Shown piece by piece: positions 1 through 22,644 of a stretch of DNA of 32,000 nucleotides. Numbering within the stretch: position 1 is the first letter of the stretch; every line of letters starts with the position of its first letter. A program made the translations under genes and the position numbers. The stretch comes from Zygophlyctis sp. KS116 (lineage: Eukaryota; Fungi; Chytridiomycota): positions 3,299 to 35,298 of the forward strand of contig BAAFSQ010000093.1 in the NCBI GenBank assembly GCA_054661495.1. Direction: 5' to 3'. The notes under the pieces are model-generated. The model was not told the DNA's origin. It saw only the letters and a program-made list of their open reading frames with translations, and searched no databases.

Positions 1-914
1 GCTTCGTCGAATGTAGCTTCTCCTAAATTCTGTCGAACCACATCTTCAATAACTTTTACATCTAAAAAATATCCCTTTGTCAAAAATCTCGTTAATTTCC
101 TACTAAGAGTTCCTCGAACACTCTTTTTAGAGAAAGCTTCCAAATTTATATTCTTTCCGTTTAATAAATTGGGTAATTCTTCTTCAGTATGCGTGCAAAC
201 CAGAGCCGCTATAAGAGCGCCAACCGAACTACCACATATTATTTTTGGTAATAATCTTTGTTCAAATAGTGCCTTTGCAACTCCTAAATGTATCAGCCCA
301 AAAGTGGATCCCCCTTGAAAAACGAGAGCAGTACACCCATAACTTTGTTTACAGTCATTCATCATATCATATTTTTCTTTTACTATAATATTAAATATAA
401 ATCATACTTACTAGTTGCATTATTGAAATTTGTAAGAGATATATATCGTAATAGTTCAGCGTAAGCTCTGTTGTAATCTTCAATTAATAATTTAGTTCCT
501 AGATAGTATTTAGCAAACAGTCGAGTATCGGCGACACCACAAAAGTTCCTTAATAGTCCAGATCGAAGAGTATAAGTCAATACAGAGAAATCCTTTGTCT
601 TCAAAAGCGAAAGCAACTCGATCGTACGTTTTCTAATCTGTTTGTAGTCATAGATGTGGGAGTTGGGAAGATACTTCCAATGCTCATAGCCTCGAAGTAT
701 ATCCAGCTCCAATGCTGTTTTGTACCATGTGGTGAAATCGTTTGCCGTGTCCAGTTTATCTTCCAACAAATCAATGGGGGTTTTGACGGATACAATGTCT
801 AATTTCTAGCATTAAATGTTTGAGACTTACTTTCAATATATATGTCTGGACAGCGTTAAAGAAGAAAAGTATCTGGGAAAGAATACTGCTGATAATCTCG
901 TGTATTTTTAACAT
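1..914 (-). CDS. Patatin-like triacylglycerol lipase (Tgl3/4/5, SDP1 family), runs off the left edge
   Basis: ATG at 914 (MLKIHEII); introns 806-830 (25 nt) and 383-411 (29 nt). Spliced frame gives LRSGLLRNFCG...GTKLLIEDY (DUF3336-like), then ALVFQGGSTFGLIHLGVAKALFEQRLLPKIICGSSVGALIAA (patatin Gly-rich loop and GxSxG). Confidence 0.9.
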
Positions 915-915
915 T

Positions 916-3900
916 CTAATCTAAAAAGCCGACAATATTTACTCCTCTCTCACTTTCACGCACTGCAATCACTCCCTTTCCTCCAGTGATTTTCCTTAAT
1001 AAATCTGCATCATATCTTTCACCCTTTAAATAATCCCATTCAGTCGTAATTTCTCCGCCATGCCATCCAAGGTTTGCTATTGGATCCATGCATATAAGAG
1101 GTCGTGTTGACAATATCCAAGAGGCTGGTGATCTTTCACATTTAGGTATAGATTTGTCACAGTCAGTCAACAACCAAGAGTCGTATTCCTTTAATAAATT
1201 CATTTTGAGTTCAAGTGAATGTGAGCACAGAGATTGAAGAAAAAGAAATCTATCAGACAAGCTACATGGGTCAAAGTTTTTGGTTGGGCGTGGAGGACAG
1301 TGGAAAACTGAGTGATGACGAAATATTGTGGCGATATTTCCTGCTCTGCAATCAATATCCTTTGTACATTCTTTCCAGTATTTTCCTTTAGTTTTTGAAA
1401 ACATGCTCTAAATTTTAGAATTCTAATTCATTACAGAAAAATCTTGTTTAGTCATTTCACGATCTTCTGAGAGATACTTAAATATGTTCTTGGTTTTATA
1501 ATTGCTCTGTACAAAGAAACTTGACTCTGCAACAGAATCTCTTTCTATCTGGAAAATCATATCTGCAGAATTTAATGATAACAGTGCGAGATATGATTGG
1601 TATATATCACGGTAGTATACAATATCCCTAGTATTAATAAATGAAACATGCCTTGAAGAATAATGAATATTATAGTTTAGAGCGAGTATCTCAAAAATTC
1701 CCTAGTCATTACTGGGAACGCATTTTACCTTTGCAATATCACTAAAGTGGGGCTCTCCAACTTCATTTGCCTTTTTGCTAGGAAATAAATAACATGCAAA
1801 ATTCATATTGCTGCATTCTAAGTATGCCGACACGGAAAATGTCATTAAAAGTATAGATTTTCTTACCCGGCCCCCGATCAAGATTGAATGGTATACATTT
1901 TGAATTAATGGACTAATATTAGACTGCGGAATAAAATACATTTCATTTCGATTCCAGGGAATTATTGAAATTATTTTATCATTGCCCGATTCTAGCGATG
2001 TTAAATGCTGTAGTATTTCATAAAGACCTTTTTTGTGCTGGTTATTAAATAGCGCAGAATTTCTAGAACTTCAAAATATTCTAAATATACCCAGAATTTA
2101 AAAGCCACGGTGCAAGTTCTATATCAACATTTGAGATCCACTTGTTTGCATCCATACGTAAAGAATATGAATTGTTTCGCACAATTTTGGGGTAACTGTC
2201 TGAAAATGAATGATTAAGCTTCAATCCCAATAGTGATTTCATGCGGTTAATATTTGCTAAAGAAAATCCCAAGTCTTTCTGACGAGCACGGACGTGGATA
2301 GGCGACGAATAAGTCATTTCGGCAACATCAAGAATATTAAATGCTTTCCCAGTGCCAAGATTAATCACCTGGTTATTTGAGTCAGAAGTTTGAGCAGCCA
2401 GAATGATTCCACTTACCACATCATCGACATGTATAAAATCTCGAATATTAGATCCATCTCCTTCTATATATAAGGGCATTTTTAGTTGGGAGCGATGTCT
2501 AAAAATCCCAGTGACAGTAGCTGAAGGGCCAAAAGAATCCTCATGAGGACCATAAATCGAAAAAGCCCGCAGGATAACAACTGGAACTTTTGAAAGCCTT
2601 TGAAACATTTCCAATTTTTTCTCAATCGCTAACGCTACCTCCCCAATTGTGGTGGATGGCATTGGCTAAATGTTAGATTGCAGTATTTATACCGGCCGTG
2701 ATTCTGTCTGAGCTATTCCTGCATCACCATAAACATGAAAAGAAGAAAGAAAGATAAACTTTTTTACAGAAGAGTGCAAAGATGCGTTGAATAAGTCTAG
2801 ATATTAAAAACAAAAAATACTCCAATGTTCATCACCAATTTTGACAAATGCTCCCACATCTTGTCGGCCCTTCTTCGGAGTAGGAATGATTGGCATTCCC
2901 AAATGAAATATAATTTCAACATCCCGCACAGCCTTTTGACAATCTTGATAATTACCAACATATCCTTGCATAAATTCATACTGTTTGTCCTCTGAAAATG
3001 GTATATGTCTATATTTTCCATTTTCAAAACTTTCCATGATTCTCACACGATATCCGTGTTTTAGCAATTTGTCCACAAGCTATAGTTGAGACTAAATAAT
3101 ATACCCTGTGCCCGACATATCCTAAAAATCAAAATATTAGTATCTTACCTGCACCACCAATAACGAGAACGAATGGATGCCCATTTACATCTCTAATTGT
3201 TTTGGGAGTAAAGTTTAGCTCAAAAACTGAATCTGCGAGTTTGAGTGAGTTTAAATAAATGAGTCCAATGCATAATATGGAAAATAGTAATCTACTTAAC
3301 CAAATATTTTCATTCTTTTTCTGAAAAAACCTTATATCTAAAGCCAAATACCCCATAACTGCTCCACATATCCTTGAGAACCTCAAATGGTAGGAATCCA
3401 GACTATATAAAAAAGACGTCCAGACCGTTAAACTGGTAGCAATAATTGCTATATCCCATGAGAGATACTCTTTAGACTATTGTTTTAAAAATTATAAAAA
3501 TTACAAGTCTAACCCATAGATATTGAAGAAGGAGAACCAAAAAACTAGAAAATATAATTATTGATAGTCGTATTTCCTGTAAATACCCTCTACTAAAAAC
3601 ATTTTTAGCTTCAAATATAAGAAAACCAATCATAAATCCCATAAATATTGTAGGAAATGTGATATTTTCCTGTGTATTTTCTAGTCCGATTTCAAATAAT
3701 ATTACATAAGCTAGAACCATTGACAAAAATTGAACCAGAATTCCTACAAATGGTAAATTTATACTTTCAGTTTGAATTATAAACAGTAAACCAATGAGTA
3801 CATAGGTGAATTTCTTTGAAAACAGATTTTTTGGTTGTGATTTTCCTCTAAAATAATTGATAAAGACAATCAATAGTGGAAATAAACACTAGATTTAGCA

Positions 3901-4253
3901 GATTATAAAATACAAAAATCTGTCCTCTAGCCAGTGTAGTAATTTTAAATCCAAAATCCAACATTATTATAATTGACGCAATAATTCCAATATAAATTGG
4001 TTTTGAGTTTACATTGTGAGAATGATTTTCCAGTTTGAGTAAATTCCTTGAAACTCTTCTAATAATTTCTGCTAGTCCCCAACTTGCTGCATGATTTAAA
4101 AATGGAAAAACTAAAATTACTCAATAATTCATACTTGAATTGGATGGAAAAACAAGACAAATTCCCTTGTAAGATATGATTGAAGAGAATAATCTTGTCT
4201 TAGACTAAAAAGACTTACAGTAGAAAAACCTTTAAATCAACTTTGTCCTTCAT
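916..4253 (-). CDS. Multidomain membrane protein (~1018 aa): SLC35/TPT-like nucleotide-sugar transporter + extended-SDR epimerase-like domain + PF03407/GT77-like transferase domain
   Basis: One stop-free frame from ATG 4253 to TAG 916 after removing 11 GT-AG introns (4194-4218, 4111-4134, 3889-3913, 3477-3504, 3122-3148, 3080-3104, 2797-2820, 2666-2692, 2069-2090, 1702-1728, 1408-1434). Epimerase motifs: VLVIGGAGYVG, KKFIFLSSFHVYG, LRAFSIYGP, GDGSNIRDFIHVDDV, NLGTG. The transporter and GT calls are weaker pattern matches. Confidence 0.75.
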
Positions 4254-4297
4254 ACTAATCTTTTAAAATTAAATCGGACTTTCTCAATTCGTGTCTT

Positions 4298-5140
4298 TTA
4301 AGAATTTATTTGTGCACAATCTGGACAATACCATTTCCCTTTTACAGGACCATCTAAACCAACACACTTTTCTTTTAATTCTAAAAATTACCTTGTAATG
4401 AAACCACTCAATACTACAATCTTCATTATCACAAGCAATCATTTCTCCAAAAGACACTTGTGAGCATATACAATATGTAGGTTCTGAATGTGGTGCAGGA
4501 GATATCATTTCTGCATCTACATCTCCTACTTCTGGATCTACTAGAGGATCTAAATTTGAATTTACTTTTACATTTTCAGGTTCAACCTTTACATTCTCAG
4601 TGACTGTATTTGATCTATTTTAGAATGAAATTAAATCTTTTAATACCTTGTAGCTCTTGTAGCTCTTTTATTTCCTGTAGAATTATTTGAATTTGACTCT
4701 AGTAAATCATATTTTTCCAAAGACTCTATAGAATTTTTAACAATTGAAGCTTCTTTAGAGACTCTAGGAGAATCAAATTTCCTCTTTTTAGGAGTTTCTT
4801 TAATCCCAGAGAGCTGATCTTCTTCAAATTTGAGTAAATCCGACTCTAATCTAGAGACATGTTCATTTACCATTTGAGTACAAGTTGAAGAAATTTCCAC
4901 CTGTTGGTAACCTATATTCTTAATTTTCTTAATTTCAGTAGAGATTCTAGAGAGCAATTGAGTCTTTTCTAGTGAATTTAAATCTAAATTTTGCAAGAAT
5001 TTTGTGATTAATTCTTTCAAGAGAGTTTTTGAAGACTGTAATTTATAATCTACTTGTTTTAGAATAGTATATTGACGAGAGAGTTCATTTGGGAGCGAGT
5101 CCAGGACGTCACAATAATCTAGCAAATGTGGAATTGACAT
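4298..5140 (-). CDS. ING family PHD-finger chromatin protein (Yng2/Pho23-like)
   Basis: N-terminal [16 protein letters not shown] (ING domain); [34 protein letters not shown]|[17 protein letters not shown]; introns 4615-4646 and 4367-4391. Confidence 0.93.
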
Positions 5141-5146
5141 TTCTCG

Positions 5147-5248
5147 TCTAGGTTTTTACTTTTTGCAGTAGGTTTACTTTAACAGAGTTAATCTAGGTTT
5201 TTACTTTTTGCAGTAGGTTTACTTTAACAGAGTTAATCTAGGTTTTTA
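5147..5248. repeat. Exact 45-nt tandem duplication (about 2.3 copies) in the ING/Rab8 divergent promoter
   Basis: TCTAGGTTTTTACTTTTTGCAGTAGGTTTACTTTAACAGAGTTAA at 5147-5191 and 5192-5236, partial copy 5237-5248. Confidence 0.95.
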
Positions 5249-5250
5249 AC

Positions 5251-5284: not shown

Positions 5285-5937
5285 ATGGCAACGTCAAAAT
5301 CAGCCAGTTACGATTACTTGATTAAACTATTGCTCATTGGAGATTCAGGTGTCGGTAAGAGTTGTTTACTCCTTCGTTTTTCTGATGATGCCTTTACTCC
5401 TTCTTTTATTACTACAATTGGAATAGATTTTAAAATCAGAACAATTGAATTGGATGGCAAAAGAATTAAATTACAGATTTGGGATACAGCTGGACAAGAA
5501 CGTTTTCGTACTATTACTACTGCATACTATCGTGGTGCCATGGGAATATTACTGACTTATGATGTCACGGATGAAAGATCTTTTAATAATATTCGAAATT
5601 GGATGAGAAATATTGAACAACATGCTTCTGAAGGTGTAAACAAGATACTTATAGGAAATAAGGCTGATATGTTGGATAAAAAAATTATTAGTAAAGATCA
5701 AGGTCAGGCTCTTGCAGATGAATATGCAATAAAGTTTATTGAATGTAGTGCCAAGTCTAATATTGGTATTTTTTTTTCTTTTTTAAAAAAATAGGTGTAG
5801 AAGAAGCCTTTTTTACATTAGCTAGGGATATTAAGAAAAGATTGATTGATACTGCACAAGATAAAGAAGCTAATGATACTATTACAGTTGATGATAAAAA
5901 AGGTGGATCACTGACTAGTAGTTGTTGTGGAAAGTAA
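5285..5937 (+). CDS. SEC4: Rab8/Sec4/Ypt2 small GTPase
   Basis: [52 protein letters not shown]; intron 5766-5794; C-terminus SSCCGK with CC prenylation motif. Confidence 0.96.
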
Positions 5938-5965
5938 TTTACGATTTACGCATATTTTAAAAAAA

Positions 5966-10459: not shown

Positions 10460-10519
10460 AGAGTTTTGTACCAATGTCTGACATTTGGCGCGTCCCAGCC
10501 CTTGACAGAATTTTTTAAA

Positions 10520-11698
10520 ATGAGACCAAGTCTAGGAACTGGCGGTAGATCGTCAGTCTCTGGATCCATCGCATCAGTCTTTGGATGCACTGGGTTTCTA
10601 GGAAGATATCTAGTAAATAATTTAGGAAGAAGTGGAACACAAACAGTCATTCCTTATCGTGGATGCGATGATGACAAGAGACATTTGAAAATTATGGGGG
10701 ACTTGGGACAAATAGTTTCAATGAAATTTGACCCATTGTCGACTGATAGTATGCGGGAATGTTTGCGTTCCTCTAATGTTGTTTACAATTTGATGGGCAG
10801 AATGTATCCAACAAAGAATTACAGTCTGGAAAAAGTTCATGTGGACATGGCAAGGGAAATCGCAAAGTTATGCAAGGAAACAGGGGCTAGATTAGTTCAT
10901 GTATCTGCTTTAAACGCTTCTGTCGATTCATCATGTCAGTTTTTAAAAGCAAAGGTACTTATTTTTCCATCCTTTTAGGAATTGCATGGATCTTAAATTT
11001 TAGGCTCTTGGAGAACAAGCAGTACTGCAAGAATTACCTGATGCAACTATTATTAGACCTTCATATATGTATGGTGATGAAGATAGATTCTGGAATAGAA
11101 TGGGATGTATTATATTGGATTTTTAATTAAATAGCTCAATCTAAATGGAAAGGAGGAATTTTTCTTCCTGGATCAGGAAATGTTAGATTTAGACCAGTGT
11201 ATGTGGGTGATGTAGCTGCAATTATGGCGAAAATGGTAAAGGATGATAGAGCAGATGGCAGAATTGTGGAATTATTTGGGTTTGTCTTTAATATGCTAAT
11301 TTTAGACCAAAAGAGTATTATTACAAGGATTTAGTCCAATTATTTTTAGATGTTTCTGGTAATGCCGCTGAAGCACGTCCAGTTCCTAAAGCAGTTTACA
11401 AGTATTTTAAATTTCTAATGATAAATAGGATTATAGCAGGTTTGTTTGAAAAACTAAAAGTCTTTCCAATTATAACCTCTGATGAAGTTGAAAGGGTAAA
11501 TTTTAGTAATTTAAAAGATAGCTTTTTATTGATGATGTCATATCAAAGGATGCATTGACATTTAAAGACTTTGAATATAGACCTCACTCTGTAGAAGAGA
11601 CTATAACGCGATTTGTACGAATGTACAGACCTGCAAGATTACAAAGAGTCCCTTTGGAAGAAAATATCAAATCTTATGCTATAAATGAAAGTAATTAA
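10520..11698 (+). CDS. NDUFA9: NADH:ubiquinone oxidoreductase 39/40-kDa subunit
   Basis: GGRSSVSGSIASVFGCTGFLGRYLVN, RHLKIMGDLGQ, YGDEDRF, PVYVGDVA; 5 introns (the first, 10955-11003, is 49 nt); TAA at 11696-11698. Confidence 0.95.
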
Positions 11699-21705: not shown

Positions 21706-22644
21706 CTAATAGAACGATCCAGAAAATTCCTTGTCTGTTGAACCTCTTATAGTTGCATTGTTCCATAAGCCTATAGAATATGAATTTATAAAGGCATCAT
21801 TCACCAGCTTTTGAATGGAATTTTGTGAGTCCACAAATGTTGGACCATTTCTAGTCAAAGTATTGGCCGCTGCGAGACAAGAAGCACTGTTGGCTGTGGG
21901 AAGCCAAGAAGCACAGTAGTTATGATAATTTTTCCAGTTGATATTGAATTTGATTATATGCTTTTTGACAGCAGACTTGCAAATAGTAGCATCAAAATAG
22001 CAAAAATATGCGACCATATTCACGCAAGCTTGCGTTGGATTTAGATTATCATCCATAACACACTGAAAAGATGAATCTTGGTATCTAACTCTAAATACCT
22101 GTGCTCTCTTTAACAATGAAGAGACACTACCAGCAAGAAGATATTTTGGATTGGAAATAGGTGGCCATAATGTAGAAAATGCAAATTTAGCGTTTACTCC
22201 ATATATATCCCAGAAAAAGTTTATCATAGTGCCTGCAATATCATCTGTAATAGGTGTCTTTTCAGCAGGACTATTGATATAGCCCTTCCTCTTTAGATTC
22301 AAAATACTACTATTGCAGGCAGTAGAGTACTTTTCAGTCACTTGAATTCCTGTAGTAGAAGATACTCTACCGGGGAAGCAATTGTCTCCAAAAGATCTCC
22401 AAGGACTTGTTGCGCTAAAGGAATCAAAGACTGTGTTAGTGAAGGCCGTACATTTGGGACCATTTCCACCGGTAGTAGTACTGCAAAAGTAGGAAACTTT
22501 ATTAAGGCAATCTATATAGGGATTCCCCATTGAATCAACATTGCAAGTAAATGTAAGAGCATTTCTGGTAAAGCGGAATACCTGTGCGGAATAACCCATG
22601 GGAATGATTGAAGCCCAGATAGCCAAAGCAAGATTGTGTTTCAT
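21706..22644 (-). CDS. Secreted Cys-rich two-repeat precursor of unknown function
   Basis: Signal peptide MKHNLALAIWASIIPMGYSA; two six-Cys repeats, each starting AQVFR; KR before repeat 2; intronless. Confidence 0.8.
   Translation of the reverse strand: MKHNLALAIWASIIPMGYSAQVFRFTRNALTFTCNVDSMGNPYIDCLNKVSYFCSTTTGGNGPKCTAFTNTVFDSFSATSPWRSFGDNCFPGRVSSTTGIQVTEKYSTACNSSILNLKRKGYINSPAEKTPITDDIAGTMINFFWDIYGVNAKFAFSTLWPPISNPKYLLAGSVSSLLKRAQVFRVRYQDSSFQCVMDDNLNPTQACVNMVAYFCYFDATICKSAVKKHIIKFNINWKNYHNYCASWLPTANSASCLAAANTLTRNGPTFVDSQNSIQKLVNDAFINSYSIGLWNNATIRGSTDKEFSGSFY

Follow-up and report, generated by a model that had tools for sequence, protein, structure and literature searches.

A conserved fungal protein that joins a multi-pass membrane domain, a predicted pseudo-SDR fold and a degenerate GT77-like fold in one chain

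Introduction

GT77 proteins of early-diverging fungi that carry an added GDP_Man_Dehyd or Branch domain have been described in one sentence (Orlowska & Muszewska 2022, PMC8778642). In the first of these types, Nucleotid_trans (PF03407) is combined with GDP_Man_Dehyd (PF16363), so that an SDR fold and a GT77 fold occupy a single chain, as they do in the protein described here; an SDR–GT77 fusion as such is therefore not new. The likeness is one of described architecture only, as the published account includes neither a membrane domain nor an analysis of catalytic sites, and PF03407 stays below threshold in our protein. These proteins are not named in the portion of the supplements available to us. 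A survey of fungal nucleotide-sugar enzymes (PMC8092308) mentions no fusion. Our literature search found no report of a carrier-containing version, a carrier–epimerase–transferase fusion or catalytic loss; an earlier note on this DNA regarded the three-domain architecture as not known to be characterised.

Each of the three parts has better-known relatives. The plant Golgi enzymes GAE and MUR4/UXE are lumenal, membrane-anchored extended-SDR NDP-sugar 4-epimerases, and the SDR domain of the fusion resembles them in being membrane-anchored and probably lumenal. Thermotoga maritima GalE (4zrm), MoeE5 and WbpP share with this domain the fold, the GxxGxxG motif (altered in two orthologues), the catalytic Ser and the RDFIHV and INLG motifs; in contrast to such extended-SDR 4-epimerases, it lacks YxxxK and, predictably, 4-oxidation chemistry, and it is fused on both sides. 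The GT77 (RGXT, RRA and XEG113) and GT34 transferases resemble the C-terminal part in atlas features (0.94–0.95), in the register of the DxD strand and in a C-terminal K...W, whereas the fusion has S/A-x-D, Gln in place of His, an extra Cys/Trp-rich tail and a multi-pass anchor instead of a type II anchor. The SLC35 carriers (Vrg4, CST and the TPT-like SLC35C/E) and the regulatory SLC35A4 have about ten helices with spacing similar to that of the N-terminal bundle, in which the conserved basic substrate-cavity residues look absent by eye. Finally, the described associations of carriers with transferases are complexes (PMC6709370, PMC6453868), while the fusion is covalent.

It is still unsettled whether the nucleotide-sugar carriers of the Golgi pass their donors straight to a partner enzyme, and the arguments so far come from interaction assays. 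A natural, conserved fusion of carrier-, epimerase- and transferase-like parts provides Rosetta-stone evidence of joint action, even with catalysis apparently lost. Moreover, it brings to light an apparent multi-domain pseudoenzyme in uncultured zoosporic fungi, whose glycan machinery is little known.

Gene structure

The window, the whole stretch of 32,000 nucleotides that was analysed, belongs to the AT-rich, 12.7-Mb assembly of Zygophlyctis sp. KS116, a lake-dwelling fungus, in which the fusion gene is present as a single copy. The gene occupies 916..4253 on the minus strand, and forms one spliced reading frame with its ATG at 4253 and its stop at 916-918. Splicing was deduced by comparative genomics, through spliced alignment to the orthologue loci. 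The earlier note had counted 11 canonical tiny introns and about 1018 residues. The single frame stands, as the version with 11 GT-AG introns of 24–28 nt encodes 1016 aa with no internal stop, but the count does not: the model corrected by orthologue comparison has 14 exons, 13 introns of 24–28 nt and 999 aa. Its exons, all on the minus strand, are 4253-4219, 4193-4135, 4110-3914, 3888-3505 and 3476-3149 (exons 1–5); 3121-3105, 3079-2821, 2796-2693, 2665-2091 and 2062-1940 (exons 6–10); and 1912-1729, 1701-1652, 1627-1435 and 1407-916 (exons 11–14). Spliced models were used for the frame, intron-position, motif and dN/dS checks, and the database and fold searches were performed exon by exon.

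For intron 1, the orthologues favour 4218-4194, and the alternative position 4229-4205 was rejected for this reason. Orthologue comparison also revealed two in-frame, stop-free introns. The counterpart of the first (1913..1939, minus strand, 27 nt) measures 52 nt in the orthologue L040 and 31–32 nt in the orthologues L035 and L036, where it breaks the frame and is thus obligatory. The second (1628..1651, minus strand, 24 nt) is a GC-AG intron, with GT-AG counterparts of 22, 26 or 28 nt in L002, L003, L031, L033 and L036, and is absent from L040. Its GC donor, common to the window and the strain L038 with GT-AG in other relatives, represents a GT-to-GC switch. In the spliced alignment, the introns of the orthologues agree with those of the window in both codon and phase. 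A genetic code with reassigned TAA/TAG was rejected, since the stops sit within GT-AG segments that are conserved in position and variable in length.

Two further observations concern the introns themselves. Those of L040 are 35–63 nt long at the window intron sites, and together with the window introns they form a natural series of intron shrinkage. L036 lacks three introns (at aa 97, 334 and 836); the introns at aa 97 and 334 are present in both the window and the distant L040, which implies their loss in L036.

Conservation of the fusion

In exon-wise searches, relatives of the gene were found only in metagenome contigs, from freshwater metagenomes, with 41–97% identity to the window over the SDR part. 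L038 is a near-identical strain, and L035, L036 and L040 show 66%, 58% and 41% identity, respectively. The L040 model reaches 1030 aa with no stop inside the frame, and its exons 1 and 2 are uncertain. With the last exon as the query, an unrestricted phmmer search gave six fragments, all metagenomic, but no protein of full length; a JGI metagenome search for further relatives yielded no contig beyond one already known, and a search of viral sequences produced no match. The order proposed in the earlier note is retained among the orthologues, with the multi-pass membrane domain followed by the extra helix, the SDR fold and the GT77-like fold, and both this architecture and the intron positions are conserved in L035, L036, L038 and L040.

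The three parts were further proposed to form a single polypeptide, and several observations bear this out. The membrane/SDR junction lies within one exon in every orthologue that spans the region. The linker between the SDR and GT folds (aa 626–660; 2041..2173, minus strand) contains intron 9 (2090-2063) in the window, while in L040, the most distant orthologue, the SDR/GT junction is intronless. In addition, the linker is 78–88% identical in L035 and L036, with a dN/dS of 0.13–0.15. The corresponding values are 0.16–0.17 for the SDR part, 0.19–0.26 for the GT part and 0.30–0.38 for the membrane part; synonymous sites are close to saturation in the comparisons with L035 and L036, but the comparison with L038 agrees. 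All of the domains are thus under purifying selection, with dN/dS mostly between 0.13 and 0.38. A decaying pseudogene is rejected on the same grounds, as dN/dS is far below 1 in every domain. The gene encodes a real, conserved three-part protein.

The locus is flanked by an ING-family gene on one side and a patatin lipase gene on the other. The neighbours in the window are a patatin/DUF3336 lipase at 1-770 (minus strand), an ING PHD protein at 4284-5140 (minus), a Rab8/Sec4 gene at 5285-5938 (plus) and ClpP from 5927 onward (plus). The upstream ING/Rab/ClpP order is conserved in L035, L036 and L038, and the downstream patatin gene is kept in L001–L004, L033 and L038. L040 has other neighbours than the window, and TTI1 takes the downstream position there and in L032. 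At 5150-5250 of the window, in the short spacer that separates the ING gene from the Rab8/Sec4-like gene, a segment of about 41 nt is repeated in tandem almost perfectly.

The SDR domain lacks its catalytic Tyr and Lys

The middle of the protein (aa 327–625; 2174..3173, minus strand) was correctly recognised in the earlier note as an extended-SDR NDP-sugar epimerase fold. PF01370 matches exon 9 with E=7e-15 and 55.6 bits, above the gathering threshold, and reaches 82 bits on the read-through; consistently, GalE-type structures match the domain. The Rossmann GxxGxxG motif (aa 332–338; 3111..3158, minus strand), which is split by intron 5, is intact in the window, L038 and L040, and L035 and L036 have Ser in place of its middle Gly. 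The catalytic Ser/Thr on beta5 is also present, within an LSS motif (443–445) that is conserved in all models.

In contrast, alignment to T. maritima GalE 4zrm places Ile468 and Ala472 at the YxxxK position (2633..2647, minus strand). The corresponding residues are Leu/Ala in L035 and L036 and Leu/Asn in L040, and the catalytic Tyr and Lys are missing from the window and from all four orthologue models. The paralogues in the same genome keep YxxxK; we take these to be UGE-, UXS-, GER- and NRS/ER-like from their motifs. SDR oxidation at C4 needs YxxxK, as established for SDR chemistry. With both residues replaced, the domain is predicted to be unable to oxidise C4 and hence to be catalytically dead, so that the "convert" step would be gone. 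The automatic JGI annotation of these genes as "UDP-glucose 4-epimerase" is wrong.

Among the paralogues, two tandem UXS-like copies (presumably UDP-xylose synthase; L008/L009, G000:C9:74555-76633) lie about 1.3 kb apart and have identical Pfam scores. They represent a recent duplication or an assembly artefact.

The C-terminal domain resembles GT77 with degenerate motifs

The C-terminal third had been likened to PF03407/GT77. Its putative GT77/GT34-like GT-A fold (aa 661–925; 1141..2040, minus strand), with degenerate motifs and conserved cysteines, agrees with this likeness in two respects. The ESM Atlas features of the orthologue P0021 score 0.95 for GT34 and 0.94 for GT77, and the ten best family matches all belong to one clan. 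Moreover, hhalign against the GT77 proteins of the same genome gives P=0.0095 in the right register, with their DxD aligned to the S/A-x-D of the fusion. A Pfam assignment fails: the best PF03407 match, again on P0021, is in the right place at 13.1 bits (E=0.095), below the cut-off of 22, and a PF03407 scan of the genome did not find the fusion locus. A PDB profile search with the GT part was blank, and its AlphaFold model, built on too shallow an alignment, has a pLDDT of 34.

The DxD motif, described as metal-binding for RRA (PMC10744005), corresponds to Ser771-Arg772-Asp773 (1624..1656, minus strand), and is split by the GC-AG intron. Seven loci have Ser or Ala in place of its first acid, L032 has Glu, and the second Asp is invariant. 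Gln894 (1234..1236, minus strand) occupies the position of the C-terminal His. Each of the eight orthologue loci that cover the position has Gln, and the paralogue L020 from the same genome has His. Thus, in what we take to be the GT77 C-terminal motif, HxN...K...W, the fusion family has Q-x-L/I, and the Lys and Trp after it are kept. The domain is short of two of the usual three metal ligands. The VYxR[DN] stretch is conserved, and the region of the DQ motif appears by eye not to be conserved across the orthologues. The domain looks like a GT77 that fails two defining motifs, and its sequence makes inactivity rather likely.

The protein ends with a Cys/Trp-rich tail (aa 926–999; 919..1140, minus strand) that has no match outside the fusion family. 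Elsewhere in the genome, a GT14/Branch-like ORF lies directly upstream of a GT77-like ORF at two loci (L021:187-2253, on G000:C229, and L019, on G000:C355), which appear like the published Branch–GT77 combination (PMC8778642). The DxD of L021 also looks degenerate (ESG). The two products may serve as active partners or may represent parallel fusions with a pseudo-GT.

The membrane domain and the topology

How is the protein held in the membrane? The N-terminal multi-pass domain (aa 1–275; 3327..4253, minus strand) would have about ten helices by register, and hydropathy shows eight peaks in the window and nine in L040 ahead of the extra helix. Its first 300 or so residues had been read as an SLC35/TPT carrier, with a match to PF03151/EamA expected. 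That match is absent: exon by exon, none of PF03151, PF08449, PF04142 and PF00892 matches the domain, and scans of the genome with the DMT-clan Pfam models missed the fusion locus while finding about a dozen others. PDB profile and atlas searches with the membrane part were blank. An AlphaFold model of one membrane exon has seven helices at a pLDDT of 47, and fold searches on such a model are uninformative.

What survives of the carrier reading is a weak, partly collinear signal against an SLC35 profile, and the likeness is one of helix register only. Exon 3 of L040 aligns to the TM2–4 region (its score was reached by three of 500 shuffles), the TM10 piece of L040 aligns at the expected place (none of 500), and exon 4 of the window gives z of about 2 in the expected register; several other membrane exons do not score. 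The profile is small, consisting of the genome's own SLC35 proteins, and a deepening search added only three proteins, so these tests are underpowered. We consider it probable that the membrane domain is of SLC35 ancestry and much diverged. This strong divergence makes transport by the domain doubtful.

An extra transmembrane helix (aa 283–303; 3243..3305, minus strand) follows a Lys/Arg-rich loop, in which each of the five models has three to five Lys/Arg residues ahead of the helix. In Vrg4-type carriers, both termini are cytosolic (PMC6709370). If the bundle is oriented as in Vrg4, then an eleventh helix places the C-terminus in the lumen. Consistently, the N-glycosylation sequons N430, N612 and N625 are kept in L035, L036 and L038, with variation of the middle residue and of Ser/Thr (L040 has others), and ten Cys residues after the extra helix are invariant. 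The basic loop, the kept sequons and the invariant cysteines make a lumenal position of both soluble folds likely, as the earlier note had suggested from the extra helix.

Discussion

On balance, we favour the interpretation that the protein belongs to a Golgi complex for glycan synthesis, as a pseudoenzyme subunit on the lumenal side. It would be one ER/Golgi membrane protein, in which a diverged, probably SLC35-derived bundle and one extra helix hold a pseudo-SDR domain and a probable pseudo-GT77 domain in the lumen. It may have been kept as a non-catalytic partner, serving as a scaffold, a folding helper or a donor- or acceptor-binding subunit, while catalysis in the glycan-building complex would be performed by ordinary GT77/GT14-type transferases, and ordinary SLC35 carriers and epimerases from other loci of the genome would supply the donors. 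Such genes are at hand: alongside about a dozen SLC35 loci of the ordinary kind, the genome has several SDRs that are intact and further GT77 genes, so that other proteins can carry out the chemistry. The most likely descent would be from an active carrier–epimerase–transferase fusion. Cosmc/C1GALT1C1, CHPF and plant IRX9 are non-catalytic glycosyltransferase partners, which likewise combine a GT fold and a degenerate DxD with selective maintenance, as a chaperone or scaffold; in contrast to these single-fold type II proteins, the fusion would contain two dead folds and a multi-pass domain. Against the subunit interpretation, the second DxD Asp, VYxR[DN] and the catalytic Ser are all conserved, as is the full GxxGxxG in two lineages, L032 has ExD, and the Gln that invariably stands in for the His could have a function.

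Some of these features bear on a rival reading, which we regard as possible but unlikely: the GT77-like domain would be an active transferase, metal-independent or using a single Asp, for which the dead SDR binds or concentrates the donor or mediates dimerisation, and the membrane bundle anchors the protein or still imports the donor. Some GT-A enzymes, such as GT14 and bacterial GT6, are metal-independent. The invariant second Asp and the Gln, Lys and Trp motifs, the ExD of L032, the purifying selection on the GT part and its atlas similarity to GT34/GT77 all fit such an enzyme, but the first DxD residue can be Ser, Ala or Glu, the His is absent from every locus and the DQ region, judged by eye, is unconserved.

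We are equally tentative about the N-terminus being a true SLC35 carrier, which would make the protein the first natural single-chain carrier–epimerase–transferase, either still importing or a pseudoenzyme descendant. In one version, it would import the donor for an unusual, metal-independent transferase by way of a dead, donor-binding SDR; in another, active parent fusions would exist among the unstudied SDR–GT77 proteins of early-diverging fungi. If true, such a chain would open Golgi substrate channelling to genetic study.

Distinctly less probable is that the N-terminal bundle is an unrelated multi-pass anchor, or that the protein is a cell-surface sensor of glycans or nucleotide sugars with the dead enzyme folds as its ligand-binding ectodomain. 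The blank Pfam, PDB and atlas searches and the family-specific Cys-rich tail would suit this, and an odd number of helices would render the soluble part extracellular if the protein reached the plasma membrane; against it stand the collinear exons on the SLC35 profile, and a cytosolic signalling tail is not evident.

The fully active import–convert–transfer channelling unit that the earlier note envisaged is very improbable. Its domain order and topology fit, and complexes of carriers with transferases do occur in the Golgi of mammals (PMC6453868), but aliphatic or neutral residues replace the SDR catalytic Tyr and Lys in every orthologue, the GT metal ligands are degenerate, and the carrier is missed by family models that recognise about a dozen paralogues. 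Least credible of all, and rejected, is the wrong joining of two or three adjacent genes, for which intron 9 between the SDR and GT parts might speak, as the membrane/SDR junction is intra-exonic, the SDR/GT linker is conserved and uninterrupted in L040, and the block stays intact in a lineage with different neighbours.

Two other features of the window deserve mention. An NDUFA9-like exon, identified by eye at 10466-10978 (plus strand), suggests that complex I is present; we take NDUFA9 to be the SDR pseudoenzyme of complex I. At 21706-22644 (minus strand), a 312-aa ORF with no evident introns begins with a signal-peptide-like segment, is Cys-rich and apparently contains two internal repeats, and it may encode a secreted protein.
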